From sequence record NC_042116.1: 64,000 nucleotides of DNA; one strand, 5' to 3'. Under the pieces are notes generated by a model. That model saw only the letters and a list, made by a program, of their open reading frames with translations, made no database searches and was not told the origin of the DNA. This document shows, piece after piece, positions 9,563 to 61,728 of the stretch (position 1 is the first letter of the stretch; every line of letters starts with the position of its first letter). The position numbers and the translations under genes are program-made.

Positions 9563-10195
9563 ATGAAACAATGTTTAAATTGTAATAATGAAATTGATGA
9601 TAAGAAAAAGTTTTGCAATAGTTCGTGTGCTGCAAAGTACAATAATTCTCACAGGATATTATCGGAAGAAACAAAATCTAAAATTTCTAAATCTTTAAAA
9701 GGTCGAGAAGTTAAATTTATTGAAACTGAAAATGTTAAGTCTGGAAGACTTCGAGCGGGTGCTAAACGGAGAGAGGCAGCATTGGAACAATTGATGAAAC
9801 GTGATTTTAATGATTTAAGTTTGGTAAGAAAAAAGAAACGTGTTAGAATAGAGCAAGAAAATAAATGTTTCAGGTGTGGATTGAATGAATGGATGAATGA
9901 ACCATTAATATTAGAAGTTGATCATATAGATGGTGATAATACTAATAATATAAGAGAAAATTTACGTGCATTATGTCCAAATTGTCACTCACAAACTGAC
10001 ACATGGAGAGGTACGAATTCACGAAAAGTAAAAATTTCTGATGATGATTTAGTATCTATATTAAAAGAATCTAAATCCATACGAGATGCAATTTTAAAGG
10101 CTGGCATGTCAATTACTAGTCATAGTTATAAAAGAATAAACTTATTAATTGAGAAATATCATATTAATTTTTTACTAAGGGTAAAGGAGGTATAA
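9563..10195 (+). CDS. HNH endonuclease
   Basis: CFRCG...LEVDHIDGDNTNNIRENLRALCPNCHSQT. Confidence 0.9.
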   Translation: MKQCLNCNNEIDDKKKFCNSSCAAKYNNSHRILSEETKSKISKSLKGREVKFIETENVKSGRLRAGAKRREAALEQLMKRDFNDLSLVRKKKRVRIEQENKCFRCGLNEWMNEPLILEVDHIDGDNTNNIRENLRALCPNCHSQTDTWRGTNSRKVKISDDDLVSILKESKSIRDAILKAGMSITSHSYKRINLLIEKYHINFLLRVKEV

Positions 10196-11685: not shown

Positions 11686-11805
11686 AATATTTTAATTAAA
11701 CTCATTTTTGTACTTGACATAAATCAAGAAATGTCTTACAATGTGTATATGTTCAGTAATGAACTAAACCGTTGTTAAACTATAAATTACCTTTTGGGTG
11801 AAAAA

Positions 11806-13392
11806 ATGAAAAAAACTTTATTAGCGTTATCTATTGTAGTAGCATCAATGACTGCATTTAACGCAACCGCAGCAGTCTCTTTAAAATCATCAGGCGACCA
11901 ATTTGGTCCGGCTATGTCTGATTTACTGCAATCAAATGAAAACGGTAACTGGAATCAGCAACGATTCATGAACACGTTCAATAATCGCTTTAATGGTACT
12001 GAAGCAGAAGCATTAGCATTGTTTAATGCTGTAAAAGGTGGTAATGTTCCAACATCCCTTGATAGCTTTAATAGTACTTTACCATCTTCAGGTGGTACTG
12101 TCACAAAAGGTGATAAGGGCGATAAAGGTGACAAAGGCGAAAATGGTGCAGATGGTACAAAAGTATCATTAACTCCAGATGGTACTATTACATTGGATGA
12201 TGGTAAAGGTGGAACCGTTCAACAAGATTTGGCTACACAAGCTGAATTAAATCAAGAACGTTATAAACTTGAACAAAAAGATAAAGAACACGATGTTACT
12301 CTTACTGATCATGAAACTCGTTTAGATACAGTCGAAAATATGACGAATGGTTTAAATGTCGTTGTAGGGACTAATAAACAAGATATCGAAGAATTAAAAG
12401 ACGGTAAAGCAGACAAAAAAGATCTGGATAAAGAAGTTGCAGATCGTGATGCTGGTGATAAAGTACTAGATTCTAAAATTGATAATGTAGTATCAAATCA
12501 ATCAAGTACTGATGCTGCACAAAATGCCGCCATTGATAGTAAAGTAGATAAAACTACACAAGCAGCGAAAGATTCAGCTCAAGATACTGCTATTGGTAAT
12601 AAAGTTGACAAAAGTCAATATAATACTGATAAAGTAATTCAGGGTATTCATGATGCTGCACAAGACAATGCAATTATCGGACTGGCAGTAACAAAAGCAG
12701 ACAAAAAAGATCTGGATAAAGAAGTAGCTGACCGTAAAACCGCAGATAATAAATTGCAATCAAATATTGACAATGAAGCAAATGTGCGTAATAATGCAGA
12801 TGTTGCATTGAAAAACAATATTGATAAAAATAAAGCTGACCAACTTGGTGTTGATACTGCACAAAATGCCGTTATTGATACTAAAGCAAGTAAGCAAGAT
12901 TTAAACACTGAAGTTGATGAACGTAAAGTAGCTGATAAAAAGTTGCAGAAAAACATTGACAATGAAGCAAATGTACGTAATAATGCAGACCAAGTTCTTA
13001 GTTCTCGCATTGATACAAATAGTACTACTTTAGTACAACACGACCAACGTATTACAAGTAACACACAACGTGTTGGTGTAGTTGAAAATCGTGTAACTAA
13101 TTTAGAACAAAGTACTAATCGTCGGTTTACAGAATTAAAAAGTACTGTAGATGATAACCGTAAAGTTGCAAGTGCTGGTATTGCTGGTGCAGGTGCAATG
13201 GCAAATATTCCACAAGTATCGCAAAATAGTACTTTCTCTGTCGGTGCTGGTATTGGTGGTTATGATAGTGAGCAAGCAGTTGCTGTAGGATTCTCTGCTC
13301 GTATTAACAACAACATTGTAACTAAGGTTGCTGTAAGTACAAATACACAATCCGAGTTGTTATGGGGTGCTGGTGTAGGTGTAGAATGGTAA
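11806..13392 (+). CDS. YadA/Eib-type trimeric autotransporter adhesin
   Basis: Signal peptide MKKTLLALSIVVASMTAFNATA; collagen-like GDKGDKGDKGENG; repeated stalk motifs (DKKDLDKEVADR, NIDNEANVRNNAD); C-terminal anchor ...GAGIGGYDSEQAVAVG...GAGVGVEW. Confidence 0.9.
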   Translation: MKKTLLALSIVVASMTAFNATAAVSLKSSGDQFGPAMSDLLQSNENGNWNQQRFMNTFNNRFNGTEAEALALFNAVKGGNVPTSLDSFNSTLPSSGGTVTKGDKGDKGDKGENGADGTKVSLTPDGTITLDDGKGGTVQQDLATQAELNQERYKLEQKDKEHDVTLTDHETRLDTVENMTNGLNVVVGTNKQDIEELKDGKADKKDLDKEVADRDAGDKVLDSKIDNVVSNQSSTDAAQNAAIDSKVDKTTQAAKDSAQDTAIGNKVDKSQYNTDKVIQGIHDAAQDNAIIGLAVTKADKKDLDKEVADRKTADNKLQSNIDNEANVRNNADVALKNNIDKNKADQLGVDTAQNAVIDTKASKQDLNTEVDERKVADKKLQKNIDNEANVRNNADQVLSSRIDTNSTTLVQHDQRITSNTQRVGVVENRVTNLEQSTNRRFTELKSTVDDNRKVASAGIAGAGAMANIPQVSQNSTFSVGAGIGGYDSEQAVAVGFSARINNNIVTKVAVSTNTQSELLWGAGVGVEW

Positions 13393-14089: not shown

Positions 14090-15094
14090 ATGGCTAAGAA
14101 CACAATTACTGATATTGGCGAAGTTGAACGTACTGTGAATTATATCAAGTTCCAGATCTCTCAAGCTGATGAGCAGCTTGCACCATTCGCTAACAGCGAT
14201 AAGCCAAAGATTTGCTATGCACATCTGTTGGAGTGGAAAAAGCAGTTGCAATCTGAACTGTATGAAATCCGTCAGGCTCAGCAGAAAGCACGTCATAACA
14301 ATCCACACAAGTAATAAGCCATGCCGCCAACAATGCTGGCGGCGTCTTTTAAGTGATAACAAGAGTATATTATAATGAAAAGTGCAACAGCGTTAAAAAA
14401 TATGAATCAGCGTATTCAAACATTACGTTCTCAACGGGATTTAGCTTGGTCAGATTGGAGTAAGTTAAATAGTATTGAGACTAAAACCAAAGATGAATCA
14501 AAAGATCTATCTAAAATTTCAGGTTTTATTAGTAAATTAAATTATGAAATTCGCGGTTTGGAATTGTCTTTTAATGAATTGAAAAAACAAGTCATTGATG
14601 AAATCATTTTGTCTTAATAAAAAATGGGGTTAGTTATGGGTGTGATAGTTATTTACTGTATATTAGGTTCCCTTGGTTTATTCACATTGTATATGTTTGT
14701 AGTAACATCTGCAATGGGGACAGAACGACTTAAAACTTCTCAGTACTTTATGTCTTCATTGAGTTATTGTGAAGAAGCAACAACTAAAATTAATTTGTTG
14801 ATTGATAAGTATGAAGCAGGGCTTATTAAAGCAAAATTAAAAAATAATGTAATTGAATTTACTGAAATGGAAAAAAATATTCCAGCAGGTGAAATCTGGA
14901 TAGCAAATAAATATTTTTCATATGGTCAGTTACATCGTTATGGTGCGAATGGAAATATCTCTTGGCAATGTAATAAACCAAGTTTAAAAACTTTTAAACG
15001 AATTATTAAACTTGAAAAACAGCTAAACGTTGCTCATCAAGAACCAGTACCGAAAAGTGCAAAATCAACAGATGAGCCTGTAATTTTGGACTAA
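14090..15094 (+). CDS. hypothetical proteins (14090-14314, 14375-14617, 14624-15094)
   Basis: ORF track; sigma70-like promoter TTGACA-17-TATAAT near 13977; hairpin GCCGCCA/TGGCGGC at 14323-14343. Confidence 0.75.
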
Positions 15095-15197
15095 GGGCGT
15101 AATTGCCCTATTTTAATTAAGAGATTTAAAATATACATTTGAGAACTTCATGGTATGGGAAAAGTAGTAAATTTCTTTCAAATGTTATCGTAAATAT

Positions 15198-15227
15198 TTG
15201 AAACAACTAAAAAAATTGTGGTATAAT
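15198..15227 (+). promoter_or_regulatory. RNA-gene promoter class
   Basis: TTGAAAC-N14-TGGTATAAT upstream of Y-like RNA. Confidence 0.8.
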
Positions 15228-15244
15228 ATAGTACATAAGGCAAC

Positions 15245-15360
15245 GGAATCTTACAGCAAAAATACTAATTTTGATGAAAACGAAACGACGAGGTTCGAAT
15301 CCTCACCCACGAATTGCCTTATTATTAGTGGGAGCATGGTGCTGGATAAACAAAGATTCC
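15245..15360 (+). ncRNA. YrlA-like RNA (topology 2, permuted tRNA body)
   Basis: GGAATCT/AGATTCC ends, TACAGCAA, GAGG-TTCGAAT-CCTC T arm, CCCAC/GTGGG closed acceptor, AGC-ATGGT-GCT D arm. Confidence 0.8.
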
Positions 15361-15380
15361 AAAATTTAAGTTAGAAAAAT

Positions 15381-15410
15381 ATGAAACAAATCAAAAATTT
15401 GTGGTATAAT
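15381..15410 (+). promoter_or_regulatory. RNA-gene promoter class
   Basis: ATGAAAC-N14-TGGTATAAT. Confidence 0.8.
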
Positions 15411-15422
15411 ATAAGAAGTAAA

Positions 15423-15533
15423 GCGGGATGGTGATTGATGAAAGCTGTTATTTGATTCTAGACAATCATAATAAGCGAGTAATAGAACAGGGTTCTTAAT
15501 ATCACATGGGTTCAAATCCCTGTCGCTGCACAA
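15423..15533 (+). pseudogene. degenerate tRNA-like element, possibly an eroded topology-3 member
   Basis: 3' T arm GGG-TTCAAAT-CCC and TCGCTGC-A-CAA end; internal TGATT-ctagac-AATCA hairpin; 5' acceptor strand poorly matched. Confidence 0.4.
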
Positions 15534-15543
15534 AAGCAACAAA

Positions 15544-15662
15544 TGAAATCTTACAGCAAACACAACATTTTTTCCTTGCATAGAAAAACGGTGGGGTTCG
15601 ATTCCCCAACATCCAAGTTGCTTTTTAGGATGTGTCTGGACGACCGTATGACACAGATTTCA
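15544..15662 (+). ncRNA. YrlA-like RNA (topology 2) with Ala-like CTTGCAT loop
   Basis: TGAAATCT/AGATTTCA, TACAGCAA, TGGGG-TTCGATT-CCCCA, ACATCC/GGATGT, GTC-TGGAC-GAC. Confidence 0.8.
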
Positions 15663-15667
15663 GTACT

Positions 15668-15745
15668 GTTCCGTTAGACAAATTGGTATAGTCACCACAC
15701 TTTCAATGTGGATTTCTGAGGGTTCAAGTCCCTCACGGAACGCTA
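15668..15745 (+). tRNA. tRNA-Glu(UUC), 3' end CTA
   Basis: GTTCCGT/ACGGAAC, CCACA-CTTTCAA-TGTGG. Confidence 0.9.
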
Positions 15746-15746
15746 A

Positions 15747-15861
15747 AGGATTCGTACAGCAACAATAAACTCTTAAAATTCAATTGGTGAAAACAACCTT
15801 GCAGTTCGATTCTGCTTCCACAATGCGTGGATCTGGTGGTGGATAGAAAAAACCGAATCCT
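15747..15861 (+). ncRNA. YrlA-like RNA (topology 2)
   Basis: AGGATTCG/CGAATCCT, TACAGCAA, TTG-GTGAAAA-CAA hairpin, GCAG-TTCGATT-CTGC, TCCAC/GTGGA. Confidence 0.75.
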
Positions 15862-15899
15862 GATTTTAATTAAGAAGTACTAAAGAATTTGATACACAC

Positions 15900-16052
15900 G
15901 GATTTATACAGCAAACATAATCCTAAAATAAAACATACGATAATGTTATTAACTCGGAATTCGTTCCTTTCGTTAGTACTTGGCAACTTGGGTACTTAAA
16001 TAAGTTGTATCACCTCATGTGTATCGGATTAGTGGTGATTATAAATAAATCC
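15900..16052 (+). ncRNA. Y-like family RNA, long multi-hairpin variant without obvious tRNA body
   Basis: GGATTTA/TAAATCC, TACAGCAA; internal AACAT/ATGTT, AGTAC/GTACT, ATCACC/GGTGAT helices. Confidence 0.65.
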
Positions 16053-16088
16053 AGTAAATCAAAAGTACCTTTATCGGTACTTTTTTAT

Positions 16089-16181
16089 GGAAGATTGGCA
16101 GAGTTTGGTTTATTGCACAGGTCTTGAGTACCTGCGGGGGTTAATAGCCCTCCGTGAGTTCGAATCTCACATCTTCCTCCA
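16089..16181 (+). tRNA. tRNA-Ser(UGA), atypical loop and discriminator
   Basis: GGAAGAT/ATCTTCC-T-CCA; CAGGT-CTTGAGT-ACCTG; long variable arm. Confidence 0.85.
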
Positions 16182-16199
16182 AATTTTATGTAGTACAAT

Positions 16200-16277
16200 G
16201 GGGTACGTAGCTCAGTCTGGTAGAGCAGCCATGCGAAAACGGTGTGTCGGTGGTTCGAATCCACTCGCTCCCCACTA
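16200..16277 (+). pseudogene. pseudo-tRNA (disrupted anticodon arm)
   Basis: Canonical D and T arms; GCC/GGT stem with 10-nt loop ATGCGAAAAC; mismatched acceptor; CTA end. Confidence 0.6.
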
Positions 16278-16278
16278 A

Positions 16279-16335
16279 GGAATCTAGCAGCAACCATAAC
16301 CCAATCAAACTTTTAATTTGACAATTATGGATTCC
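16279..16335 (+). ncRNA. minimal Y-like RNA (topology 1) displaying a Lys(UUU) anticodon stem-loop
   Basis: GGAATC/GATTCC, TAGCAGCAA bulge, CCATAA/TTATGG, TCAAA-CTTTTAA-TTTGA (16305-16321). Confidence 0.8.
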
Positions 16336-16358
16336 AGTTATTTTAAGTTGAGAATAGC

Positions 16359-16763
16359 ATGACGGATAACGAAAAACTTGAAAATATATTAATTGAAGCA
16401 TTGACAATAATTAATACTTCAACATATAATTTTGAAACGTCCAAAGACGATTCAAAATCTAGATTTGTCTTATGCGGTAAAAGAGCACAACTTAAGTTGT
16501 ACTTTTCTGCCAAATATGGTGAATTAAGTATAGAATTTATTCATCACTTGATTGGAGATACCCTATCATTTCAGATTAATTATTATGATGATTCGGACGA
16601 AGATGATGATTACCATAATTTATATGGTGAAATACGTATTCCAAGAACTGAAGAACAATACTTTCAGTACTACACAATTCAAGATCATGTTTTCTCTTTA
16701 GAGTTTTATAAATTATTAGAAAACATAATGAACGAATTATTGGTAAAGTGGCAGAGCGGCTGA
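16359..16763 (+). CDS. hypothetical protein, EExxFQxxT family
   Basis: PRTEEQYFQYYTIQD; true stop overlaps downstream tRNA-Ser. Confidence 0.75.
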   Translation: MTDNEKLENILIEALTIINTSTYNFETSKDDSKSRFVLCGKRAQLKLYFSAKYGELSIEFIHHLIGDTLSFQINYYDDSDEDDDYHNLYGEIRIPRTEEQYFQYYTIQDHVFSLEFYKLLENIMNELLVKWQSG

Positions 16764-16835
16764 ATGCAACCGCTTGGAAAGCGGTCAGGTTAGGTGATAC
16801 TAGCCTCGTAGGTTCAAATCCTATCTTTACCGCAA
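16742..16835 (+). tRNA. tRNA-Ser(GGA), 3' end CAA
   Basis: GGTAAAG/CTTTACC-G; ACCGC-TTGGAAA-GCGGT; long variable arm. Confidence 0.92.
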
Positions 16836-16882
16836 AAGTAATAACCTCCTTATTAAAGAATACATACCCATAGGAGAATATT

Positions 16883-17239
16883 ATGTACGAGAAAGATGAT
16901 GGTCCATTAACAGATGAACAATTGTGTATTATTCGTGAAATGAATAGTCATTTAGAACAATCTAATTTAAGTATAGACTTGGATTGGTTAAATAGTGAAA
17001 AACAAGGAAATGCAATGTATTACGACTACTATTACAAAATTGATGGTGAACTTCGTCGTCATACCAGTAATCAAGAGTTAACTGATGCGGAAATCAATAA
17101 TATTTTTGGTGCAAGCAAACATGTGGTAATGCTTACTCCAATTGTTTTTGAACGTGAGATTAGTACGGAAGATAAGTCTGGTAATAAAATTAAAAGTACT
17201 GAAAAAGTACACGTAGGATTTTTAGGTTACGTGGAATAA
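16883..17239 (+). CDS. hypothetical protein
   Basis: GGAG RBS; ORF track. Confidence 0.7.
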   Translation: MYEKDDGPLTDEQLCIIREMNSHLEQSNLSIDLDWLNSEKQGNAMYYDYYYKIDGELRRHTSNQELTDAEINNIFGASKHVVMLTPIVFEREISTEDKSGNKIKSTEKVHVGFLGYVE

Positions 17240-17284
17240 TATAATTTATTGGATTCGAAAGAATCCTTTTTAAGTGAGATGATT

Positions 17285-17509
17285 ATGGATAATCAACATA
17301 AAAAGATTAAAGGGTATCGTGACCTTTCTCAAAAAGAAATCGATGCAATGAATGAAATTAAACAACTAGCAGCTACTGTTGAAGAGTTAATTGAAAAACT
17401 TGAAGGAACTGACTCTATTGATAAACGCTGGCTTGCTATTGCAAAAACAGATTTACAAAAAGGGTTCATGTCAGCAGTGCGAAGCGTGGCTAAACCAGAT
17501 TCCTTTTGA
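17285..17509 (+). CDS. acb2: anti-CBASS protein Acb2 homolog (cyclic oligonucleotide sponge)
   Basis: From ATG17285: [20 protein letters not shown]...[27 protein letters not shown], near-identical N- and C-terminal motifs to Acb2 as recalled. Confidence 0.88.
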
Positions 17510-17517
17510 GGAAAATA

Positions 17518-17898
17518 ATGCATCCAATTGATAACCATGCTGATATAATTGATGATGTTATAACTGAAATACTTGAAATTTATACGTGTAAAGTTGAAGT
17601 TTATAATTATGGTAATTTGTTTTCACAGCACGGCTATAGTACTAAACATAATATAAATTATCATATAAATGCAAAGTACTATAATAATAATTCAAAAAAT
17701 GGTAGACGAGCTAATAGTCTTGTGATAGAATTTAAATTCACTAACAGAGTTCCTAAAGGACTAAAAGATTATTATAGATTATCAATACCTGAAATACAAA
17801 GTATTACAGAAGAACGACATTTTCAATTAATGTTAGTTACTGATGATATGTACTTGGATTATGAAGTTATAAATAAATTACGTACACATATTATGTAA
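17518..17898 (+). CDS. hypothetical protein, EExxFQ family
   Basis: ITEERHFQLMLVTD. Confidence 0.75.
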   Translation: MHPIDNHADIIDDVITEILEIYTCKVEVYNYGNLFSQHGYSTKHNINYHINAKYYNNNSKNGRRANSLVIEFKFTNRVPKGLKDYYRLSIPEIQSITEERHFQLMLVTDDMYLDYEVINKLRTHIM

Positions 17899-17907
17899 AA
17901 AAGTTTT

Positions 17908-17961
17908 TAGAATCTAACAGCAATCAAAACTCATTGGATATATGAAAAAAAATAGATTCTA
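17908..17961 (+). ncRNA. minimal Y-like RNA (topology 1)
   Basis: TAGAATCTA/TAGATTCTA, ACAGCAA, TCAT-TGGATAT-ATGA apical hairpin. Confidence 0.75.
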
Positions 17962-17966
17962 GTATT

Positions 17967-18041
17967 TGGGAATTATCTCAGCGGTAGAGAGCACAACTGA
18001 TAATTGTGAGGTCACTGGTTCAAATCCAGTATTCCCAACTA
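17967..18041 (+). tRNA. tRNA-Ile(GAU), 3' end CTA
   Basis: TGGGAAT/ATTCCCA; CACAA-CTGATAA-TTGTG. Confidence 0.9.
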
Positions 18042-18137
18042 AGTAGTTCAGTACTGAAATATGTACAGTGAAATTATTCAACACTATAGGTAGAACTTTG
18101 AATGAATCAGTAAGCCTATAAGTAACTATATTAAATT

Positions 18138-18268
18138 TGGAATTCAACAGCAATCTTCACTTACTAAAAACAGCTACCTCACGGTTTGTAGGTTCGAGTC
18201 CTACCTTGTACTTTCGAGTACATGTGGTGAAATCGGTAAACACGGCTGTCAAAAAGAAATGAATTCCA
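18138..18268 (+). ncRNA. YrlA-like RNA (topology 2) built from a permuted tRNA-Leu-type body
   Basis: TGGAATTCA/TGAATTCCA, ACAGCAA, ACAGC/GCTGT stem, ACC-TCAC-GGT variable arm, GTAGG-TTCGAGT-CCTAC, TGTAC-TTTCGA-GTACA closed acceptor, Leu-type D arm TGGTGAAATCGGTAAACAC. Confidence 0.85.
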
Positions 18269-18321
18269 GTATTAATTAAGACATAAATATTCTTATACAT
18301 TATTTTTGTAGGAATATAGAT

Positions 18322-18534
18322 ATGGAAATGAAAAAGTTGATGGAAGAGATATCTTCCATAATGGAAGGACAATTACCATGATATTATTATCACGGTAGCT
18401 CTAGACCAATATCAAATTTCAGTGATGAGTTTGTGGGAGAACGTTTTATAATAGTATATAATCCAGCAAGCATAAAAGTTATAAACACTTTCAATCCAGA
18501 AGAAGCTAAGCAGAAACTACTTGGAAGTGATTAA
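18322..18534 (+). pseudogene. interrupted remnant resembling an ADP-ribosyltransferase (ART-PolyVal-like) domain
   Basis: In-frame TGA at 18379; downstream YYHGSSRPISNFS and IVYNPASIKVI motifs directly juxtaposed (core deleted). Confidence 0.4.
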
Positions 18535-18540
18535 AAAATT

Positions 18541-18660
18541 TGGAATTCAACAGCAAATCATTCAAAACACGTAGCATGTCGTAGGTTCAAGTCCTACCAG
18601 TACTTAATTGTACTGTAGCTCAGTCGGGAGAGCAGCCACCTTAAAAAGAAATGAATTCCA
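18541..18660 (+). ncRNA. YrlA-like RNA (topology 2)
   Basis: TGGAATTCA/TGAATTCCA, ACAGCAA, GTAGG-TTCAAGT-CCTAC, CAGTAC-TTAATT-GTACTG closed acceptor, TA-GCTC-AGTCGGGA-GAGC D arm. Confidence 0.85.
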
Positions 18661-18776
18661 GCCTAATTAAATTCACCAGGCGTACTATGGTGTGACAAGA
18701 TAGCATGTTATCACGTCAGAATAGAATACGTATTAGTCCCTTGAAAGGACTTCTGTAAACTCAATTTATAATATTT

Positions 18777-18830
18777 TAGAATCTAACAGCAATCAAAAAT
18801 CATTGGATATATGAAAAAAGATAGATTCTA
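18777..18830 (+). ncRNA. minimal Y-like RNA (near duplicate of 17908-17961)
   Basis: TAGAATCTA/TAGATTCTA, ACAGCAA, TCAT-TGGATAT-ATGA. Confidence 0.75.
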
Positions 18831-18854
18831 GCTTTAATTGAATAAAACTAAATT

Positions 18855-18916
18855 TGGAATCCAGCAGCAACCATAAATGAAATCAACTGTTAATTGAAAA
18901 ATCAAAATGGATTCCA
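18855..18916 (+). ncRNA. minimal Y-like RNA displaying an Asn(GUU) anticodon stem-loop
   Basis: TGGAATCC/GGATTCCA, AGCAGCAA, TCAA-CTGTTAA-TTGA (18883-18897). Confidence 0.8.
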
Positions 18917-18936
18917 GTATTTTTAATATACATTGA

Positions 18937-19443
18937 ATGGACTCAATGAAAAAAGATATAGATAATAGTAAAGTTATTTCTATGATAGAACAAGGTCGTT
19001 CTGTTAGAGATATAGCTAAAGAGTGTAATGTCGCTTATTCAACAATGAACAAGTATTTCAAAAATAATAATTTGAAATCACAATATATGATCCAATTAGA
19101 ATCACCTATATGTTTTAAACATAATGTTGAGTTTACTAAACGTAATAATTCTAATAAGAGAATATGTTGGAAATGCAATGCTGAAAATGTGTCGAAACAT
19201 AGAAAAAAATTGAAAATAAAATCAGTAGAATATCTTGGTGGTAAATGTGAACGTTGTGGATATAATAAATCAATGTCAGCATTAGAGTTTCATCATAAAG
19301 ATCCTAGTGAGAAAGATTTTGAAATTTCAGCGAAAGGTATTACACGTTCTTGGCAAAAGATACAAATTGAGCTTGATAAATGTATGTTGTTATGTTCAAA
19401 TTGTCATCGTGAAATTCATGATGAACTTAATTTAGAAAATTAA
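18937..19443 (+). CDS. HNH endonuclease with N-terminal HTH
   Basis: GRSVRDIAKECNVAYSTM HTH; GGKCERCGY...LEFHH...LLCSNCHREIH. Confidence 0.88.
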   Translation: MDSMKKDIDNSKVISMIEQGRSVRDIAKECNVAYSTMNKYFKNNNLKSQYMIQLESPICFKHNVEFTKRNNSNKRICWKCNAENVSKHRKKLKIKSVEYLGGKCERCGYNKSMSALEFHHKDPSEKDFEISAKGITRSWQKIQIELDKCMLLCSNCHREIHDELNLEN

Positions 19444-19626: not shown

Positions 19627-19669
19627 AAGAATCTTTCAGCATTAACACGGTGAAAATATATAGATTCTT
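19627..19669 (+). ncRNA. shortest Y-like family member
   Basis: AAGAATCT/AGATTCTT, TTCAGCAT, GGTGAAAA loop. Confidence 0.55.
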
Positions 19670-20137: not shown

Positions 20138-20222
20138 GCGGGATTAGCTCAGTGGTAGAGCACTTGCCTTCCAAGCAAGAGGCGAATAGGTTCCATCGGT
20201 TCGAATCCGATATTCCGCTCAA
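20138..20222 (+). tRNA. tRNA-Gly(UCC) with abnormal 15-nt variable region, 3' end CAA
   Basis: GCGGGAT/ATTCCGC-T; CTTGC-CTTCCAA-GCAAG; variable AGGCGAATAGGTTCC. Confidence 0.85.
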
Positions 20223-20673: not shown

Positions 20674-20737
20674 AAGAATCCAACAGCACCCATAAATGAA
20701 ATCAACTGTTAATTGAAAAATTCAAAAATGGATTCTT
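20674..20737 (+). ncRNA. minimal Y-like RNA with Asn(GUU) stem-loop (copy of 18855)
   Basis: AAGAATCCA/TGGATTCTT (compensatory change vs 18855), ACAGCAC, TCAA-CTGTTAA-TTGA. Confidence 0.8.
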
Positions 20738-21197: not shown

Positions 21198-21200
21198 ATT

Positions 21201-21677
21201 GGTAATAAAGAGTGTAAGGGTTAGTACTTGGTATCATATTCCCCCTCTACCTTCTTCCCCCATTATTTGGGTTCTAGTCGTAGACACAATGTAGTACTTT
21301 ATTACCCGCGAATTAATATTTTATTGTGGGGTGGTAAGAGTAAGATACCGATTCAAACAAGGGTCAGAAAGATCCACTTAACCCGTTTTGAAACAATAAA
21401 ATATCCCGAAAGGGTGACGATGTGAATAGTGCATATCCTTGTAGTATGGGACAGTACTACATTTTTATAAATAAATTGGAATAGAGCATGAGACTGCCCT
21501 CACTATTCGACGCTTTAAGTAGCTTGCAGACGTTTACTGTACGTAATAAATATGATAGTAGGTTGCAATTCATATTGTTGTACTGTATCATGCAACCACT
21601 TTGGATAAAGGTCAAGAAACTAGATTCTCTTTATCGACGCTTTAAGTAGCTTTCTAGAGAGTACTTTCGGGTACTCA
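21201..21677 (+). ncRNA. candidate large structured RNA(s) with a duplicated 19-nt motif
   Basis: Long-range helices GGTAATAAAG/CTTTATTACC, ATGTAGTACT/AGTACTACAT, GGTATC/GATACC; CCC-GAAA-GGG; TCGACGCTTTAAGTAGCTT at 21507 and 21634; GAGTACT-TTCG-GGTACTC. Confidence 0.55.
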
Positions 21678-21696
21678 CCCAAATAAAATAAAACAT

Positions 21697-51822: not shown

Positions 51823-52671
51823 ATGATTAATGTGAAAAATGTTAAATTTAAACCTTCATACGTAATGGATTTTGATACTAATGTTAATGGTATTAAGATA
51901 TCAAAAACCGTACAAAAAGTTATTGCAGTTATGAAACGTGATGGCATTAAATGCCATTGTTGTGATAATGATTCAGTATTTTTTGAAGTTGTTGCTAATA
52001 ATCAAATGGCAGCATTTATTGACAAAAATGGAAAAAAAATACGTCTTACATTAGATCATGACAAATTGGATTCATTAGGTGGTCATAATGTTATAAAGAA
52101 TTTTCATGTACTGTGTGAAGAATGTAACACTATTCGTGGAGATTTATTTGCAGAGTATAGTGCTTTTAAAGCATGGTATGATGAAAAGAAAAAATCTGGA
52201 AAGAAAATATCTAAAGCAACACAATATAATTATAATAGGATTGATTTTGATCATAATATGAAACACCATTGTCAGACTATTCTTTTTGATAATGGTATTC
52301 CTAAACCAATGAAGGATATAATTACTCATGCATTTAAAAGAAAAAATACATTGTCAGGAATCTATTCGTTAAAAATTATGAAAAAAGTTGGTAAAGAAAA
52401 TTTTGATAAATTCTTATCTGAATTGATTTACAGTACTGTAGCGGAACGTTTGAATATTAAACCTATTACTAATCAAAAAGTATTCAACATTTTTCCAAAA
52501 AATGAATCGTTAATATCAAGCCAATTTTTTGCTAATTTAAATAGTAATATGAAAAATCATTTAACTTATGTTATTAAAGAATGTCAACAAAAAGAAGTTA
52601 TTGAAATACATAATAACAGTACTTCCTTGTGGACACGTCTTTATACTGCATTACGTTCGATAATTTCATAA
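51823..52671 (+). CDS. HNH endonuclease-like protein (paralog of 48240)
   Basis: CHCC...LTLDHDKLDSLGGHNVIKNFHVLCEECN. Confidence 0.75.
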   Translation: MINVKNVKFKPSYVMDFDTNVNGIKISKTVQKVIAVMKRDGIKCHCCDNDSVFFEVVANNQMAAFIDKNGKKIRLTLDHDKLDSLGGHNVIKNFHVLCEECNTIRGDLFAEYSAFKAWYDEKKKSGKKISKATQYNYNRIDFDHNMKHHCQTILFDNGIPKPMKDIITHAFKRKNTLSGIYSLKIMKKVGKENFDKFLSELIYSTVAERLNIKPITNQKVFNIFPKNESLISSQFFANLNSNMKNHLTYVIKECQQKEVIEIHNNSTSLWTRLYTALRSIIS

Positions 52672-57139: not shown

Positions 57140-58288
57140 TTATACTACTATAATAATTTCTTCAAATATTAATACGTTTGAACTGTGTGTAGTACTGTAT
57201 CCACCATAAACTGCACCACATGCATATAACTTATTATTATCGGTTAATATATAAGTATTTTGATTACTACCAATAATTAATTTTATTATTGAACTTCCCC
57301 AAACAGGAGTAATTGAACTAAATGTTAACACATTAGTAGTATTTCCCCTACCTAACTGACCACTCACATTATAACCCGTATTCATGTAAATTCCATTATT
57401 AACTAAATGTGTATTGATTGAATTAAGACCTACGAATAATTTTGAAATTGATGAACCGGCAGTTGTTATTTCAGTTAAAGTTCGATACACTGTTATTGTA
57501 CCACCATTTCCAAATTCACCATATATATTTGAACCAACTAATGATGTACCTGTTATATATAATTTATTGTCCTTTATTACAAAGGTTGAAGTACCACCAC
57601 TACCAGTATCAAATGTGCTAATACTAGTCATTACCGAAATAAATGTTGTAGTACTTGTTGTGTTTCCGGTTCCTAACTGATATGAACCGTTAATACCACA
57701 ACCCAATAAGTTGTTTGATGAATCCTTTATGAAATTACCTCTAGCCTCTTTTACATCTGAACGAATAAATCTTAAAACATTCACTGAATTAGTATTGGTT
57801 CCATCACCAAAAGACGATATTGTAGTTACATTATTTTTCCCTGAACAATAATATGAACCATCTTTTAGTACTACTTGCATTTTTGCACCGTAATGGAAAT
57901 ATATATCAGAAATTTGTGCGTCAGTTGTGATACCTACTGGACTGAATAAATCAGTTCTATTGACAAATGTAGTATTAAAATTTAAAGTGTCTGAACCAGA
58001 TAGTACTCTTGTATCTCCAGCGAACCAAAATTGATTACTAATGTCAATGTATAGTACTACTTGTGTACTTCCAGATGCCCATACGTCTTTAACACTAGAA
58101 CGTATAAAAATAAATTTAGGTACTGGATTAGTATGCCCTAATCCTAATTCACCATTTCTATTTGAACCAGCACCATATAAGTCACCACCAGTGGTTAAGT
58201 ATAATACCGCATTGGCTGAAGTGACAAGTTTCTTTATTCCTGGTATCGGTAATATATTAGTATTGCTTATTATTGGAAAAGGTAACAT
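57140..58288 (-). CDS. RCC1/BLIP-II-like beta-propeller protein (paralog 6 of array)
   Basis: MLPFPII leader; LYGAGSNRNGELGLG, GYNVSGQLGRG repeats. Confidence 0.85.
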   Translation of the reverse strand: MLPFPIISNTNILPIPGIKKLVTSANAVLYLTTGGDLYGAGSNRNGELGLGHTNPVPKFIFIRSSVKDVWASGSTQVVLYIDISNQFWFAGDTRVLSGSDTLNFNTTFVNRTDLFSPVGITTDAQISDIYFHYGAKMQVVLKDGSYYCSGKNNVTTISSFGDGTNTNSVNVLRFIRSDVKEARGNFIKDSSNNLLGCGINGSYQLGTGNTTSTTTFISVMTSISTFDTGSGGTSTFVIKDNKLYITGTSLVGSNIYGEFGNGGTITVYRTLTEITTAGSSISKLFVGLNSINTHLVNNGIYMNTGYNVSGQLGRGNTTNVLTFSSITPVWGSSIIKLIIGSNQNTYILTDNNKLYACGAVYGGYSTTHSSNVLIFEEIIIVV

Positions 58289-58298
58289 TTTATTCTCC

Positions 58299-59429
58299 TT
58301 ATACTGTTACTAATGTTATTGGTTGGAATGTTAGTACATTGGAACTAGGAGTTACGTTAAATCCACCATTTACCCCACCACACGCAACTAAACTGTTATC
58401 TTCGTATACTATATATGTATTTAAGTTACATGAGAAAATAGTAGCAGTACTAGGTACTGTAATATTCGGTACTAATCCAAATGTATAAACTACACCAGCA
58501 CTACCACGTCCCAATTGACCCGTAACACCATTACCTGTATTCATATATCCACTGCTATTGTGTAAGTGAGTTAATAAATTACCTACGTTTTGTACTAATT
58601 GTGTTATCCCACTCCCAGCTTGTACTATATTGGTTAATGTACTATAAGTAACAGCAGAAGTACTTCCATCACCAAATTCACCGTATATACCTAATGATGA
58701 ACCCATTATATATAATAACCCACCCTTAATGCAAAAAATTGATCTTACTCCAGCTTGTATAATAGTTACTCCAGTACTCAATAGTACAAATGTAGAACTT
58801 CCTGAACTTGATACTGATGAACTTAATTGGCTGTATGTATTAGTACCACATCCATATAAATTATTATTATCATCCAATATGTAATTACCATTTACTGATA
58901 ATACATTATTTCTAATAAATCTAAATGCATTAAATGAATCAGTGTTTGTCCCGTCACCAAATGAAGTAATTGCACTTATGTTATTTTTACCTGAACAAAA
59001 TAAACGACCATCATTCATTAATACATTAATTTTTGAATTAGAATATAAATCTATTGTTTTTATATCTAATAATGATATACTAGCTGAAGAAAACATAGTG
59101 GTAATATTGACAAATGCATTAGTTGGACTAGATGATCCTGTGTATATACCACTATTACCAGAAAACATAACCTTTCCATCACTATCCATTACAATTACGG
59201 ATGCACTAGATAAACTGGCAAATACATCCCTAACTCCTGAACGTATTAATATGAATTGAGGCTTAGCCCCTGAACTACCTAACTCACCCATAACGTTAGC
59301 ACCAGCACCATATAAATTACCATTTACAGTTAAATATAATAATGCAGTACTACTAGAAACAAATTTCTTTATGTTCTTTGGATATACAGGTGATGACTTT
59401 GTATTACTTATTATCGGAAATGGTAACAT
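58299..59429 (-). CDS. RCC1-like beta-propeller protein (paralog 5)
   Basis: MLPFPII leader; LYGAGANVMGELG, GNGVTGQLGRG. Confidence 0.85.
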   Translation of the reverse strand: MLPFPIISNTKSSPVYPKNIKKFVSSSTALLYLTVNGNLYGAGANVMGELGSSGAKPQFILIRSGVRDVFASLSSASVIVMDSDGKVMFSGNSGIYTGSSSPTNAFVNITTMFSSASISLLDIKTIDLYSNSKINVLMNDGRLFCSGKNNISAITSFGDGTNTDSFNAFRFIRNNVLSVNGNYILDDNNNLYGCGTNTYSQLSSSVSSSGSSTFVLLSTGVTIIQAGVRSIFCIKGGLLYIMGSSLGIYGEFGDGSTSAVTYSTLTNIVQAGSGITQLVQNVGNLLTHLHNSSGYMNTGNGVTGQLGRGSAGVVYTFGLVPNITVPSTATIFSCNLNTYIVYEDNSLVACGGVNGGFNVTPSSNVLTFQPITLVTV

Positions 59430-59438
59430 AATTCCTCC

Positions 59439-60539
59439 TTATAATGGTAATGTTATTTGTGCGAATTTTCCTGAAGAAGATGCCGTTCCAGGTAATAATC
59501 CCGCTGTACCACCTGTGCCATATACTTTCCCATTCTTAACGTAATATACACAATTGTTAGTACTCACTAATTGACTTATACCTATGTCTGTACCAGTAGC
59601 TGTACTGTCTATATTACACTTTGTATATACATATACCTGACTTTGGGTTAATCCTATATATGGACCCTGACCTGTACCATATATCCCAGCAGCCGTTCCT
59701 AGTACTGAACCATACGTAACACATGCACTCATTAATGGCTGAACTCCTGCACTCGGTACTACTACTGTACTCAATGCAGTCTTGTTACTCGTACCACCAT
59801 TACCTAATACTCCTAATGAACCATTACCTACTGTGTACCAACCATTACTCTTTAATACATATAATGTTAAATTCCCAGCCTGTACACCTATAACACTACT
59901 CCCATTAGTCACTGCTACCCATTGCGTCTGATTAGCCGCCGATGTGTTTATTATCTGATAATAATTGTTTACCCCTGTACCATATAATACATTACTGGTA
60001 TCTAAATAATATGAAGTACTTATCCCTAAACTTATCGATAAACAAAGGCTACTCCTTAATACAGGTAATGCATAATTACCACCTACATATCCTACCCATG
60101 AACCACTCATGTATAATGCATTGTTACTCAGTACAAAACTTAATGTATTACTATTGCACTGCAAATCACGTACTGAATGAGTAGTCCCTGAAATCGTTAA
60201 ATCAAATAATATAGTACTTGTACTAGTGAAACTTGTACCTGAACCTGATAACCATTCAGTCTTCCCACTGTAATATAACTTGTTATCCTGCTGTACTACC
60301 ATCGTGTAACTAAATTGTCCTCCACACCATACATCCTGTACGTTACTCTTTATCTTAAACCAACTGCTTAATGAACCAGTATTACCTAAACCAAACTGAC
60401 CATACGCATTAGTACCTAAACCGTATAAATCTCCATTAGTATATAGTACTACTATGAAATTATACCCAGTACTTATCTTCTTTATTGTCCATGTAGGTAT
60501 TATATTACCGTACTTTACTATCACCGGAAATGGTAACAT
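59439..60539 (-). CDS. RCC1-like beta-propeller protein (paralog 4)
   Basis: MLPFPVI leader; LYGLGTNAYGQFGLG. Confidence 0.85.
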   Translation of the reverse strand: MLPFPVIVKYGNIIPTWTIKKISTGYNFIVVLYTNGDLYGLGTNAYGQFGLGNTGSLSSWFKIKSNVQDVWCGGQFSYTMVVQQDNKLYYSGKTEWLSGSGTSFTSTSTILFDLTISGTTHSVRDLQCNSNTLSFVLSNNALYMSGSWVGYVGGNYALPVLRSSLCLSISLGISTSYYLDTSNVLYGTGVNNYYQIINTSAANQTQWVAVTNGSSVIGVQAGNLTLYVLKSNGWYTVGNGSLGVLGNGGTSNKTALSTVVVPSAGVQPLMSACVTYGSVLGTAAGIYGTGQGPYIGLTQSQVYVYTKCNIDSTATGTDIGISQLVSTNNCVYYVKNGKVYGTGGTAGLLPGTASSSGKFAQITLPL

Positions 60540-60550
60540 CTCTTCTCTCC

Positions 60551-61717
60551 TTAAAATGGTAATGTTAATTCTATAAATGATGTGCCTAATGTATTAGACG
60601 TTATACCCAATGAAGTACTACCACACCCCAATATTATATTATTCATCCTTCCTATATAACTCGTGTATGTCCCTATCCTTATTATATCTGTACTAGATAT
60701 TAATACAGGTACTATCGTATAACTTCCTATTACTGATGTACTTACTCCCAATCCCAATGCACCACCATTGTTATTACCACCACATACATGTAATTTGTCA
60801 TCTATTCCAATGTAACTCGATGTCGGCGGAGATGATATGAATACCATATCTTTACTAGGAGAACTCTTGTATTGAACTGGCAACTGTACCTGTATCATTA
60901 ATCCAGTACTGTTCGTATTCGTGAAACTCGTATTACCATCACCAAATGTACCAGAATCATTAGAACCTAAACAATATCCAGTACCAGATGTATAGGCTAT
61001 TACCTTTGACTCACTTACCCTTACCCCTAATATCGGATCTGTAACTGTACTGAACATACGTGTTAATGATAATATACTCGCATTTAATACCCCTCCCTCT
61101 GTACTACTCTGTAAACAATATGTCGCGTTCCTTCCCGCTCCCCATACAGTTCCATCAGTTAACATCAGTACAGTACTGTTCCCTGTAGTCGTTACATCTA
61201 ATACATTACTGCGTATGAATGTTAATGCCTTATAACCTACCGCAACTCCTGTACCTAACTCCCCGTACCTGTTTAATCCTATACCGTATAAATCATTATT
61301 GTTCATCAATACCATCGTGGTGTAACCAAAACTTATCTTCTTTATCTGTGATATGTCTATAGTACTAAAATATGAACTTACATCAGTAAACACCGTTACT
61401 TCATTCGATGTACCACCTAAATTAAATACATCCCTAGCACCACTTATATATACTTTGTTGGTATTCGTTACTATCATTGTACTCGTAGCATTACATGACA
61501 TCAATCGTACATCATTCCTTATGTATGTCAGTACGTTAAATCTGTTTACCTTATTACCTACACCTAATTGTCCACTCGTGTTATATCCACTCGTGTAAAA
61601 TAATCCAGTATTCAATAATACTATAGTCTGAAATAAATTACTATATCCAGTTTGTATATCCTTGATGAACGCAGGTTCAGGTATATTTGTGTTGCTTATT
61701 ATCGGAAATGGTAACAT
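60551..61717 (-). CDS. RCC1-like beta-propeller protein (paralog 3)
   Basis: MLPFPII leader; SGYNTSGQLGVG, LYGIGLNRYGELGTG. Confidence 0.85.
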   Translation of the reverse strand: MLPFPIISNTNIPEPAFIKDIQTGYSNLFQTIVLLNTGLFYTSGYNTSGQLGVGNKVNRFNVLTYIRNDVRLMSCNATSTMIVTNTNKVYISGARDVFNLGGTSNEVTVFTDVSSYFSTIDISQIKKISFGYTTMVLMNNNDLYGIGLNRYGELGTGVAVGYKALTFIRSNVLDVTTTGNSTVLMLTDGTVWGAGRNATYCLQSSTEGGVLNASILSLTRMFSTVTDPILGVRVSESKVIAYTSGTGYCLGSNDSGTFGDGNTSFTNTNSTGLMIQVQLPVQYKSSPSKDMVFISSPPTSSYIGIDDKLHVCGGNNNGGALGLGVSTSVIGSYTIVPVLISSTDIIRIGTYTSYIGRMNNIILGCGSTSLGITSNTLGTSFIELTLPF

Positions 61718-61728
61718 CTCTTCTCTCC

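Follow-up and report, generated by a model that had tools for sequence, protein, structure and literature searches.

We analysed a window of 64,000 nucleotides (nt) that forms the rightmost 64 kb of the record of Yersinia phage fHe-Yen9-04 (LT960551.1; 354,378 bp), a Rak2-like jumbo phage of the genus Eneladusvirus, and that contains five tRNA-like elements whose parts occur in circularly permuted order. By comparing related sequences, we show that all five are members of a family of RNAs that is strand-specific, apparently confined to phages and clustered with tRNA genes. The same comparisons show them to be circular permutations of tRNA genes that bear an insert, with the anticodon loop lost, because the module that encloses each element also occurs, in reversed topology, within tRNA genes of normal order, and its removal in silico from those genes leaves a perfect anticodon stem-loop. 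An earlier note on the window had interpreted the elements as Y RNAs. Our findings point away from Y RNAs bound by Ro and towards a phage system of RNA processing that has not been described.

The 3.9 kb around the elements match the fHe-Yen9-04 record with 100% identity. The region is about 90% identical in Serratia phage BF and the Erwinia pEa_SNUABM phages, and about 71–75% identical in Pectobacterium phage CBB, Cronobacter phage GAP32, Xanthomonas phage XbC2 and Erwinia phage Kaldavass. ARAGORN predicts 24 tRNA genes in the window, every one on the + strand. We refer to the permuted elements as E1–E3 (starting at 15245, 15545 and 15747), E4 (15900), E7 (18139) and E8 (18542), and to the interrupted tRNA genes of normal order as N1–N3 (7544, 8367 and 9377). 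The five permuted bodies of the earlier note (E1–E3, E7 and E8) are all present where it had placed them, on the + strand, but only E7 and E8 are complete; E1–E3 are tRNA bodies in part.

All five have the same order of parts: the 5′ strand of a helix that we call P1, then one nucleotide and RCAGCAA and, after a spacer, a T arm (GGTTCRANTCC), a hairpin where the acceptor stem would be, a segment containing GG, an A-rich strand and the 3′ strand of P1. The scaffold that the earlier note had recognized around them is a module that also lies within the anticodon stem of three tRNA genes that are normal in other respects, which the note had missed. This module is an internal loop between two helices. 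It consists of P1 (5′-RGAAUCY/RGAUUCY-3′, 7–9 bp) and two junction strands, of which the 5′ strand reads W-RCAGCAA followed by about 10 nt that are almost free of G, and the 3′ strand is A-rich. In the consensus built from 94 non-redundant members, (U)(U)RGAAUCY-W-RCAGCAA and the nearly G-free stretch of about 10 nt precede a variable part, an A-rich run ending in AU, and RGAUUCY. The latter is followed by A, then G (91% of members), then a U-rich tail. The second helix of the module carries a full tRNA body (E7 and E8), a T arm with a closed hairpin (E1–E3) or a small hairpin alone.

P1 exhibits covariation, with the forms GGAAUCU/AGAUUCC, GAAAUCU/AGAUUUC, GGAUUCG/CGAAUCC and GGAAUUC/GAAUUCC. 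At its inner end, there are U-G pairs that are valid only on the + strand, and these strand-specific pairs argue for an RNA structure and not a DNA structure. Minimum-free-energy folds of single copies said little about the junction.

The window contains 15 copies of the module, all on the + strand and all within 7.5–20.7 kb; 14 were found with a regular expression and N3 by reading. The same expression matches nowhere on the − strand and nowhere else in the window. RCAGCAA itself occurs 23 times in the window, where 11.7 ± 3.2 occurrences are expected. In the first 100 kb of phage BF, a region that lacks the tRNA cluster, the expression matches zero times on the + strand and once on the − strand.

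Outside the window, convincing members turned up in a pattern scan of IMG/VR, both in Rak2-like jumbo genomes and in other metagenomic contigs (L006, L022, L025, L048, L075, L080 and L135). The copies in L006, L022, L025, L029, L048, L075 and L080 lie among tRNA genes and on the tRNA strand. Contig L025 (178 kb) has two copies with compensatory changes in P1, and has only weak matches, to phage sequences from human faeces. L025 and L029 are the two of these contigs that we compared with isolate genomes. The module occurs also in tRNA clusters of contigs, such as L025, for which no close match to Rak2-like phages was seen. The L135 member is a tRNA-Gln gene with an insert; it is among the matches listed by a scan of viral contigs for the hairpin form, most of which are chance matches in coding sequence. 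A stricter pattern matched 27 times in 185,579 bacterial and archaeal genomes, and all of these matches resemble chance hits in coding sequence, so we set aside a bacterial origin of the module. The family thus appears, from the distribution of its sequences, to be restricted to phages with tRNA clusters.

We also compared the module with known RNAs. Rfam searches, both at the gathering score and at E ≤ 10, returned only tRNA and sub-threshold matches to the YrlA family, and no ribozyme, riboswitch or CRISPR repeat in Rfam matches the module. Readings of RCAGCAA and GAAA as a hammerhead, a tag like that of transfer-messenger RNA (tmRNA) or a boxA-like signal were rejected by eye: there is no third helix, no G3-U70 pair and no conserved reading frame. 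RCAGCAA was likewise rejected as a seed that pairs with targets; its complement TTGCTGY is not enriched on the + strand, and a pairing with a GUUGCU in E2 is not family-wide. We found no description in the literature of the RGAAUCY/RCAGCAA module, of phage permuted tRNA-like genes or of a link between the two, and a large catalogue of predicted viral RNA structures (PMC10690425) may hold the module unnamed.

E7 (18139–18267, + strand) is a complete permuted tRNA body, Leu-like and of class II, that has no anticodon loop. Its enclosure consists of P1 GGAAUUC/GAAUUCC, A-ACAGCAA and CAAAAAGAAAU. Within this lie an anticodon stem, GCUGU/ACAGC (18170–18174/18245–18249), a class II variable arm (18175–18187), a T arm, GUAGG-UUCGAGU-CCUAC (18188–18204), an acceptor stem of 7+1 bp that is capped by UUCG (18205–18224) and followed by U8 and G9, and a D arm with the three-pair stem GUG/CAC and the loop AAAUCGGUAAA (18227–18243). 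E8 (18542–18659, + strand) has the same kind of enclosure around a complete class I body, again without an anticodon loop. It comprises the anticodon stem GCCAC/GUAGC, the variable loop AUGUC, the T arm GUAGG-UUCAAGU-CCUAC (18581–18597), the acceptor CAGUAC/GUACUG, followed by U8 and A9, and a D arm.

The class II variable arm and Leu-type D arm that the earlier note had seen in the first of these copies are borne out, since E7 is nearest to the phage's own tRNA-Leu(UAA). The class I D arm with a GCTC/GAGC stem that it had seen in the second is also present: the arm reads GCUC-AGUCGGGA-GAGC and belongs to a class I body. The 5′ half of E8 is nearest to a class I pseudo-tRNA at 16201–16273. Given that E7 and E8 are nearest to different tRNAs, the note's proposal that they were derived independently holds.

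Several observations argue that these structures are maintained as RNA. E7 and E8 are conserved, with compensatory changes, in at least six phages. An unguided RNAalifold prediction from six aligned E7 orthologues contains P1, the anticodon and D stems, the variable and T arms and the acceptor. Across these six orthologues, 98.3% of the cells of the E7 structure are paired, as against 32–40% in slid controls. Pair changes on both sides of a helix number 10 in E7, compared with 5.1 ± 1.4 in shuffled data, and none of 500 shuffles reached the observed value. The nucleotides that make tertiary contacts in tRNAs are kept (U8, A14, G18 G19, G53 T54 T55 C56 and A58). In both elements the 3′ half precedes the 5′ half, the acceptor strands are complementary and the helices covary.

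We also rearranged the elements in silico, trimmed the outer module and submitted the results to ARAGORN. E7, E8 and all their orthologues are called as tRNAs once re-permuted in this way. However, the “anticodon” that ARAGORN reports shifts with the arbitrary cut, and it differs among orthologues (aaa, taa, aac, aca and aat). After the termini are joined, ARAGORN finds no conserved 7-nt loop next to the anticodon stem in the re-permuted elements or their orthologues. The acceptor stems are closed by UUCG-type tetraloops in several orthologues of both elements; that of E8 is closed by loops of 4–6 nt, which are UUAAUU in the window, AUCG in BF and UUCG in GAP32. Without a definable anticodon loop, neither E7 nor E8 can become an ordinary decoding tRNA. 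As their predicted structures stand, with an undefinable anticodon and acceptors under UUCG-type caps, they can neither decode nor be charged.

The module occurs in a different context in the tRNA genes N1–N3, all on the + strand. N1 (7544–7657) has a 41-nt insert (7573–7613) between tRNA positions 28 and 29, N2 (8367–8492) has a 51-nt insert (8399–8449) between positions 31 and 32, and N3 (9377–9497) has a 49-nt insert (9404–9452) between positions 28 and 29. N1 and N3 stood out as oddly long Rfam tRNA matches, and N2 was found by reading. Their topology is the reverse of that of the permuted elements: P1 is closed by a tetraloop, the acceptor end is open with normal flanks, and the 5′ strand of the anticodon stem is interrupted. 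The three closed forms of P1 are GAUUCUU-gauu-AAGAAUC-UU-ACGGCAU, GGAAUCUU-gaaa-AGGAUUCU-A-ACAGCAU and GGAUUCUA-guac-UAGAUUCC-C-GCAGCAA. In each case the A-rich strand lies 5′ of P1 and the RCAGCA strand lies 3′ of it, which is the order of the permuted copies when they are read round a circle.

In phage BF, N3 reads GAGC-A-CG up to the insert, the insert consists of UAGAAACCCA, P1, U-ACAGCAA and CAAUAACUCAU, and the gene resumes with ACA-CUUUUAA-UGU-CG-UGGUC. Without the insert, the stem is CGACA/UGUCG around the tRNA-Lys loop CUUUUAA. The lower stem-loop of N3 is AGC-CUUUUAA-GCU in CBB and GAP32 and ACU-AUGAUAA-AGU in the window, and the pairs ACA/UGU, AGC/GCU and ACU/AGU therefore show that the lower anticodon stem covaries. 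N3 would thus yield Lys(UUU) in BF, CBB and GAP32 and Ile(GAU) in the window. N1 without its insert is CGUUC-AUUUCAC-GAACG (Glu, UUC) in BF, CBB and GAP32; in the window it is CGUUC-AUUCAAC-GAACG with anticodon UCA, an opal suppressor, and UCA also occurs in two metagenomic relatives. N2 without its insert reads as a tRNA with anticodon GUA (Tyr) and a class I body; its anticodon arm is GCGAA-CUGUAAA-UUCGC in BF, and in the window the first pair of the anticodon stem is an A-C mismatch (ACGAA). An amber-suppressor tRNA (CUA) is present at 2146–2221.

Once the inserts are deleted in silico, N1–N3 are canonical cloverleafs in which the anticodon stem has 5 bp and its loop 7 nt, and it is from this geometry that we infer the removal itself. 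We deleted every interval within a window of the borders and passed the products to ARAGORN, and each gene gave one fixed anticodon whatever borders were used. The joined exons of N1 and N3 align in one piece across the junction to uninterrupted phage tRNA-Glu and tRNA-Lys genes, and in two pieces in Eneladusvirus genomes. Further members with inserts are tRNA genes for Asp, Glu and Gln in contigs L021, L187 and L135. Between L021 and L187, the anticodon switches between Asp(GUC) and Glu(UUC), which resembles the GAU/UUU switch of N3. Such genes carry the GenBank labels tRNA-Pseudo, tRNA-OTHER or intron-containing tRNA. The inserts are not recognizable as group I introns: they are 41–51 nt long, and Rfam gives no intron match in the window at the gathering score or in 15000–19000 at E ≤ 10.

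The three upstream elements are reduced, and all lie on the + strand. E1 (15245–15360) has P1 GGAAUCU/AGAUUCC followed by U-ACAGCAA, the T arm GAGG-UUCGAAU-CCUC, a hairpin CCCAC/GUGGG with an 18-nt loop, and GGAUAAAC. E2 (15545–15661) has P1 GAAAUCU/AGAUUUC, a hairpin with U-rich and A-rich strands, the T arm GGGG-UUCGAUU-CCCC and a closed hairpin ACAUCC/GGAUGU whose loop contains GUUGCU. E3 (15747–15861) has P1 AGGAUUCG/CGAAUCCU, a small hairpin UUCA-AUUGG-UGAA, the T arm GCAG-UUCGAUU-CUGC, a closed hairpin CCAC/GUGG and GGAUAGAAAAAAC. In all three, the loop-closed hairpin in the acceptor position is real, as is the T arm, and in E2 the T stem and the acceptor hairpin have compensatory changes across five phages. 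By contrast, the D arm that the earlier note had assigned to these copies is not there; its place is taken by a single strand holding GG (GGAUAAAC in E1 and GGAUAGAAAAAAC in E3). Reading the elements and their orthologue alignments revealed neither a canonical D stem nor an anticodon stem in E1–E3. ARAGORN does not recognize them as tRNAs after re-permutation, with E1 called in 1 of 9600 variants and E3 in none. The GUUGCU in the acceptor-like hairpin loop of E2 is kept in all five orthologues (5/5) even though the flanking bases vary. It is complementary to the AGCAA of the RCAGCAA strand, so a pseudoknot is possible in E2.

Their surroundings suggest how these elements could be transcribed. 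A promoter-like site of the sigma-70 type with an extended −10 element (TTGAAA-18-TATAAT, TG; 15198–15227, + strand) has 11/12 matches to the consensus, the match to the consensus being its evidence, and is placed so that transcription is predicted to start about 10 nt 5′ of E1. The gene upstream of this site ends with a terminator-like hairpin (15094–15109), and a second promoter-like site (15381–15410), likewise recognized by its match to the consensus, precedes the next unit. E1 thus appears to be its own transcription unit. A tRNA-Glu gene (15668–15743, + strand) lies directly 3′ of E2, and E2, tRNA-Glu and E3 are packed together with spacers of 4–6 nt, which means that they must share one transcript and be cut apart by enzymes of tRNA processing.

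Decayed sequences occur nearby. E4 (15900–16052, + strand) is a larger permuted element with P1 GGAUUUAU/AUAAAUCC, ACAGCAA and a weak T-like arm, and it has orthologues in BF, CBB and contig L021. A decayed tRNA-like sequence at 15417–15535, 3′ of the second promoter-like site, has a P1-like hairpin (GAUU-cuagaca-AAUC) and a T loop, and Rfam gives only a tmRNA T-loop fragment there. The pseudo-tRNA at 16201–16273 matches the Rfam tRNA model with 36.4 bits, receives no ARAGORN call and is labelled tRNA-Ser in GenBank; it has acceptor mismatches and an odd anticodon arm, and a module copy without a tRNA body lies directly 3′ of it.

Six copies in the window, all on the + strand, have no tRNA body and enclose only a small hairpin. 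In three of them, the loop is identical to an anticodon loop of the phage: the copy at 16279–16335 has the hairpin UCAAA-CUUUUAA-UUUGA, with the loop of tRNA-Lys(UUU), and those at 18856–18915 and 20675–20736 (the latter with the variant ACAGCAC) have UCAA-CUGUUAA-UUGA, with the loop of tRNA-Asn(GUU). The copy at 17909–17960 (UCAU-UGGAUAU-AUGA) lies 6 nt upstream of tRNA-Ile and has a paralogue at 18778–18829, and a short copy at 19628–19668 with the variant UCAGCAU lies 5 nt upstream of tRNA-Gln. The copy at 18856–18915 is just upstream of a gene for an HNH endonuclease (18937–19443). Among members, the small hairpin covaries (UCAU/AUGA, UUCU/AGAA and UUUUUU/AAAAAA).

We looked for enzymes that could act on the module. 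Two tandem, paralogous cREC genes (8648–9010 and 9011–9370, + strand) match PF20274 above the curated cut-off (E = 1.7e-8 and 1e-9) and phrog_1479. They sit between N2 and N3, and a homologue lies near a scaffold copy in contig L080. Iyer et al. predicted that cREC opens 2′,3′-cyclic phosphates in phage RNA repair, and a role in the repair of phage tRNAs has been proposed for cREC, Pnkp and RNA ligases (PMC7824862). The cREC genes are therefore candidate end-healing enzymes, linked to the module by their position. Free-standing HNH endonuclease genes lie at 9563–10195, directly after N3, at 18937–19443, directly after two of the body-less copies, and at 51823–52671. The second of these has a homologue, 62% identical, that is flanked by scaffolds in contig L025. 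A search for a partner protein by co-occurrence, in which open reading frames (ORFs) of distant scaffold-bearing contigs were compared by tblastn with this phage group, returned only HNH endonucleases and cREC. Phage BF encodes a T4-type RNA ligase 1 (Rnl1), a polynucleotide kinase/phosphatase (Pnkp), a second RNA ligase, a Thg1-like enzyme and a nucleotidyltransferase.

An arm of about 50 nt on the anticodon stem is unlikely to fit the ribosome; the insert would therefore have to go, and splicing-like cleavage and ligation is the simplest reading. As nothing but the shared module is constant, we expect a common factor to recognize it. We propose that the module would be the recognition element for an RNA cleavage-and-ligation activity, whose products would be healed and sealed by the lineage's Pnkp, Rnl1, second RNA ligase and cREC. 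In the genes of normal order, this activity would excise the insert and give decoding tRNAs. In the permuted genes, the same reaction could join the two ends of the anticodon stem, or a protein might simply bind the module. The product would be a compact, closed, tRNA-shaped RNA that is protected from exonucleases and has neither an anticodon nor a free acceptor end. E7 and E8 could thus give tRNA mimics, to which enzymes that bind tRNA would respond as to decoys or adaptors. Those body-less copies that carry the Lys and Asn loops could mimic anticodon stem-loops, plausibly directed against host anticodon nucleases. A module-recognizing cleavage and ligation that both splices real tRNAs and yields stable tRNA mimics from permuted genes is the best joint explanation that we can offer, with a probability that we place a little below even.

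Several observations weigh against it. The distance from the module to the exon borders is variable (6–12 nt on the 5′ side and 7–11 nt on the 3′ side), and we rejected a fixed ruler from module to splice borders because of this variation. Inspection of the borders of N1–N3 revealed no bulge-helix-bulge, that is, no 3-nt bulges round a 4-bp helix, and the inserts occur at 28/29, 29/30 or 31/32. No endonuclease candidate was found, the small ORFs of the neighbourhood having no informative Pfam or PHROG match, and Rnl1 and Pnkp were read from BF, which is about 90% identical, and not from fHe-Yen9-04. E1 is nearly invariant in five orthologues and too conserved for covariation to show. Many of the body-less loops, such as UGGAUAU, do not resemble anticodon loops. 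Finally, it is tRNA geometry that suggests the removal of the insert, and the decoy function is conjecture.

The tRNAs that bear the module or are mimicked by it are Lys UUU, Glu UUC, Gln UUG, Tyr, Asp and Asn, those at which anticodon nucleases such as PrrC and colicin E5 are usually directed. This makes a decoy role attractive as a lead. A more specific version of the proposed cleavage and ligation is that large phages have a tRNA splicing system, neither group I nor bulge-helix-bulge, in which a module of 40–50 nt marks the sites and cREC, Pnkp and Rnl1 seal the products, and that closed tRNA bodies and anticodon stem-loops act as decoys against host defences that target tRNAs. We regard this version as possible, although on balance unlikely.

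The elements could instead be non-functional debris of rearrangements, produced by recombination or template switching at the near-palindromic P1 DNA and perhaps spread with HNH homing endonucleases. The many decayed tRNA-like pieces (15417–15535, 15900–16052 and 16201–16273) fit such an origin, as do the permutation break points in the P1 loop and the HNH genes next to N3, next to body-less copies and beside the scaffolds of contig L025. However, E7, E8 and E2 are kept in two phage genera and metagenomic relatives, with compensatory changes in every helix and 98% pairing, and covariation across genera argues for selection on the RNA. Debris would also not be expected to retain the nucleotides of the tertiary contacts, or, in the case of E1, a strong promoter-like site of its own. 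We consider this explanation improbable.

We assign a similarly low probability to a role in cis, in which the module would punctuate or stabilize the tRNA operon as a site for a host RNase or as a protective hairpin, with the tRNA-like parts recruiting RNase P or 3′ processing enzymes. This would account for copies that abut tRNA genes with 4–6-nt spacers (E2/tRNA-Glu/E3, 17909–17960/tRNA-Ile and 19628–19668/tRNA-Gln), for their constant position on the tRNA strand and for the AU-rich tail after P1, with G at +2 in 91% of members. It does not account for complete tRNA bodies whose D, variable and anticodon stems covary, which would be superfluous in a spacer, or for the apparent status of E1 as its own transcription unit. 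Moreover, a module inside the anticodon stem of functional tRNA genes would be unexpected.

Less probable still, and in our view quite unlikely, is that these are genuine permuted tRNA genes, whose ends are joined at the module and whose acceptor loop is opened by RNase P and 3′ processing before CCA is added to give decoding tRNAs. The bodies of E7 and E8 are complete, and the module at their termini is the insert of the tRNA genes of normal order, which is exactly how introns relate to termini in those permuted tRNA genes that are known. Ligases and a nucleotidyltransferase are encoded in the phage lineage, and the acceptor loop in the YrlA of Mycobacterium smegmatis is cleavable by RNase P and can receive CCA (PMC4201824). 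Nonetheless, the anticodon stems of E7 and E8 adjoin no 7-nt anticodon loop, and their cut-dependent, unconserved “anticodons” differ from the one fixed anticodon of each gene of normal order. Their acceptors are capped by 4-nt UUCG-type loops, which leaves almost no intervening sequence, and E1–E3 lack D and anticodon stems.

As for the Y RNAs, members of the YrlA family are defined by the order T arm, closed acceptor and D arm, by a 5′ GNCGAAN0-1G motif, by a Ro60 gene within about 4 kb on the same strand and by a covariance match (PMC4201824). The earlier note was correct that the order of domains is the hallmark of YrlA, and this order is exhibited by E7 and E8 and, in part, by E1–E3, which have no D stem. 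The search with the YrlA covariance model (Rfam RF02553) that the note had recommended does find E8 and its orthologues, but all at 36–45 bits, below the gathering score of 69. E8 scores 36.2 bits (E = 2e-5) over model positions 24–84, its orthologues in GAP32 and contig L059 score 44.7 bits (over the whole model) and 41.9 bits, and E1–E3 and E7 have no match at E ≤ 10. Where YrlA has GNCGAA, the 5′ strand reads RGAAUCY-W-RCAGCAA in all members, and we saw no GNCGAAN0-1G motif on reading the elements, for which no dedicated pattern search was run. Pfam reveals no TROVE domain in 20 ORFs of the window (all those of at least 300 amino acids and those around the elements), and hence no TROVE gene within 4 kb on the same strand among these ORFs. 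TROVE proteins do occur in some jumbo phages (PMC7824862), but the published annotation of the genus lists a tyrosyl-tRNA synthetase, a Thg1-like enzyme, a peptidyl-tRNA hydrolase and a tRNA nucleotidyltransferase, and no Ro. The elements thus resemble YrlA in architecture yet lack three of its defining features, and the proposal that new Y RNAs are repeatedly made from tRNA genes in this lineage is not supported. True Y RNAs that bind a phage or host Ro60/Rsr protein and tether an exoribonuclease are very unlikely, since a Ro site would also leave unexplained an outer module that is common to tRNA inserts and body-less hairpins.

We now note other features of the window. A tRNA-Gly(UCC) gene of 83 nt (20138–20220) has an enlarged variable region and is flanked by CAGTACTG palindromes at about 20110 and 20266. 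In 21200–21690, about 450 nt before tRNA-Arg contain only ORFs of at most 65 amino acids, are GC-richer than the surroundings by eye and have no Rfam match; this region may be another structured RNA. Five tandem paralogous genes on the − strand (57140–62889; 366–388 amino acids) match RCC1-repeat or beta-propeller families. The ORF at 41665–42684 matches sigma-70 regions 2 and 3 and is possibly a phage sigma factor. The ORF at 11794–13392 (532 amino acids) ends in a YadA-like membrane-anchor domain and is adhesin-like; its counterpart in GAP32 is also labelled an adhesin.

In a single phage genome, one small module unites interrupted tRNA genes, permuted bodies without an anticodon and bare hairpins that resemble anticodon stem-loops. 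If the module is a processing signal, it would belong to a new pathway of RNA cleavage and ligation. The proposal, if true, would give Pnkp, Rnl1 and the uncharacterised cREC a physiological substrate beyond the repair of nuclease damage, and would account for the “pseudo-tRNAs” and the oversized tRNAs in the annotations of Rak2-like phages. It would also provide a second, Ro-independent case of tRNA mimicry by a modular non-coding RNA. The interrupted genes offer a means of studying the protection or diversification of phage tRNA sets. Orthologous genes vary in anticodon, and the version in this phage includes an opal suppressor.

Among known systems, group I introns in bacterial and phage tRNA genes are self-splicing ribozymes of at least 200 nt that lie in the anticodon loop. 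The phage inserts resemble them in interrupting the anticodon arm and in their association with homing endonuclease genes, but they are 41–51 nt long, lie in or at the 5′ strand of the anticodon stem and have no Rfam intron match. Two-piece tmRNA, encoded by permuted ssrA genes, has an alanine-accepting open acceptor with a G3-U70 pair, pseudoknots and a tag reading frame. It is a bacterial RNA with a permuted tRNA-like domain (T arm, acceptor 3′ strand, linker, acceptor 5′ strand), as are the phage elements in their order, but the open acceptor with G3-U70, the pseudoknots and the tag frame are all absent from the latter.

Permuted tRNA genes occur in Cyanidioschyzon merolae and Thermofilum pendens, and split and tri-split tRNAs occur in archaea; in these, a bulge-helix-bulge is cut by the splicing endonuclease and a normal anticodon loop is regenerated. 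The phage elements share with permuted tRNA genes the order of 3′ half, short linker and 5′ half, and a motif at their termini that is the intron motif of the same genome. They differ in having no bulge-helix-bulge and, in E7 and E8, no anticodon loop. Archaeal and Cyanidioschyzon permuted or intron-bearing tRNA genes are the closest in gene anatomy, and permuted tRNA genes are nearer evolutionary relatives of the elements than Y RNAs are. To our knowledge, permuted tRNA genes are unreported in any bacterial virus, and permuted tRNA-like genes and short tRNA inserts of the protein-spliced type belong, in textbooks, to archaea and a few algae and are not known as features of bacteria or of bacterial viruses.

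The closest setting is that of the Lak megaphages, whose tRNA genes have “enigmatic” introns; phage tRNA introns were said to be previously unreported (Devoto et al., 10.1101/356790). Compared by their description, the Lak introns are likewise short, highly conserved inserts, not of group I, in tRNA genes of very large phages, whereas permuted and body-less forms were not described for Lak (10.1101/356790). YrlA (RF02553, PMC4201824) is also an RNA of two modules, with paired 5′ and 3′ ends and an inner permuted tRNA mimic where the anticodon loop would be, and its covariance model aligns to E8 and orthologues over the tRNA-like part. In contrast to YrlA, the phage RNAs have an unrelated outer module (the RGAAUCY helix and RCAGCAA), no Ro60 found nearby and sub-threshold scores; there are multiple paralogues per genome, from different tRNAs, and the module also occurs in tRNA genes and round bare hairpins. 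The elements are not members of the YrlA family, but YrlA appears to be the system closest to them in working principle, in which a protein-binding module is joined to a tRNA-like module.

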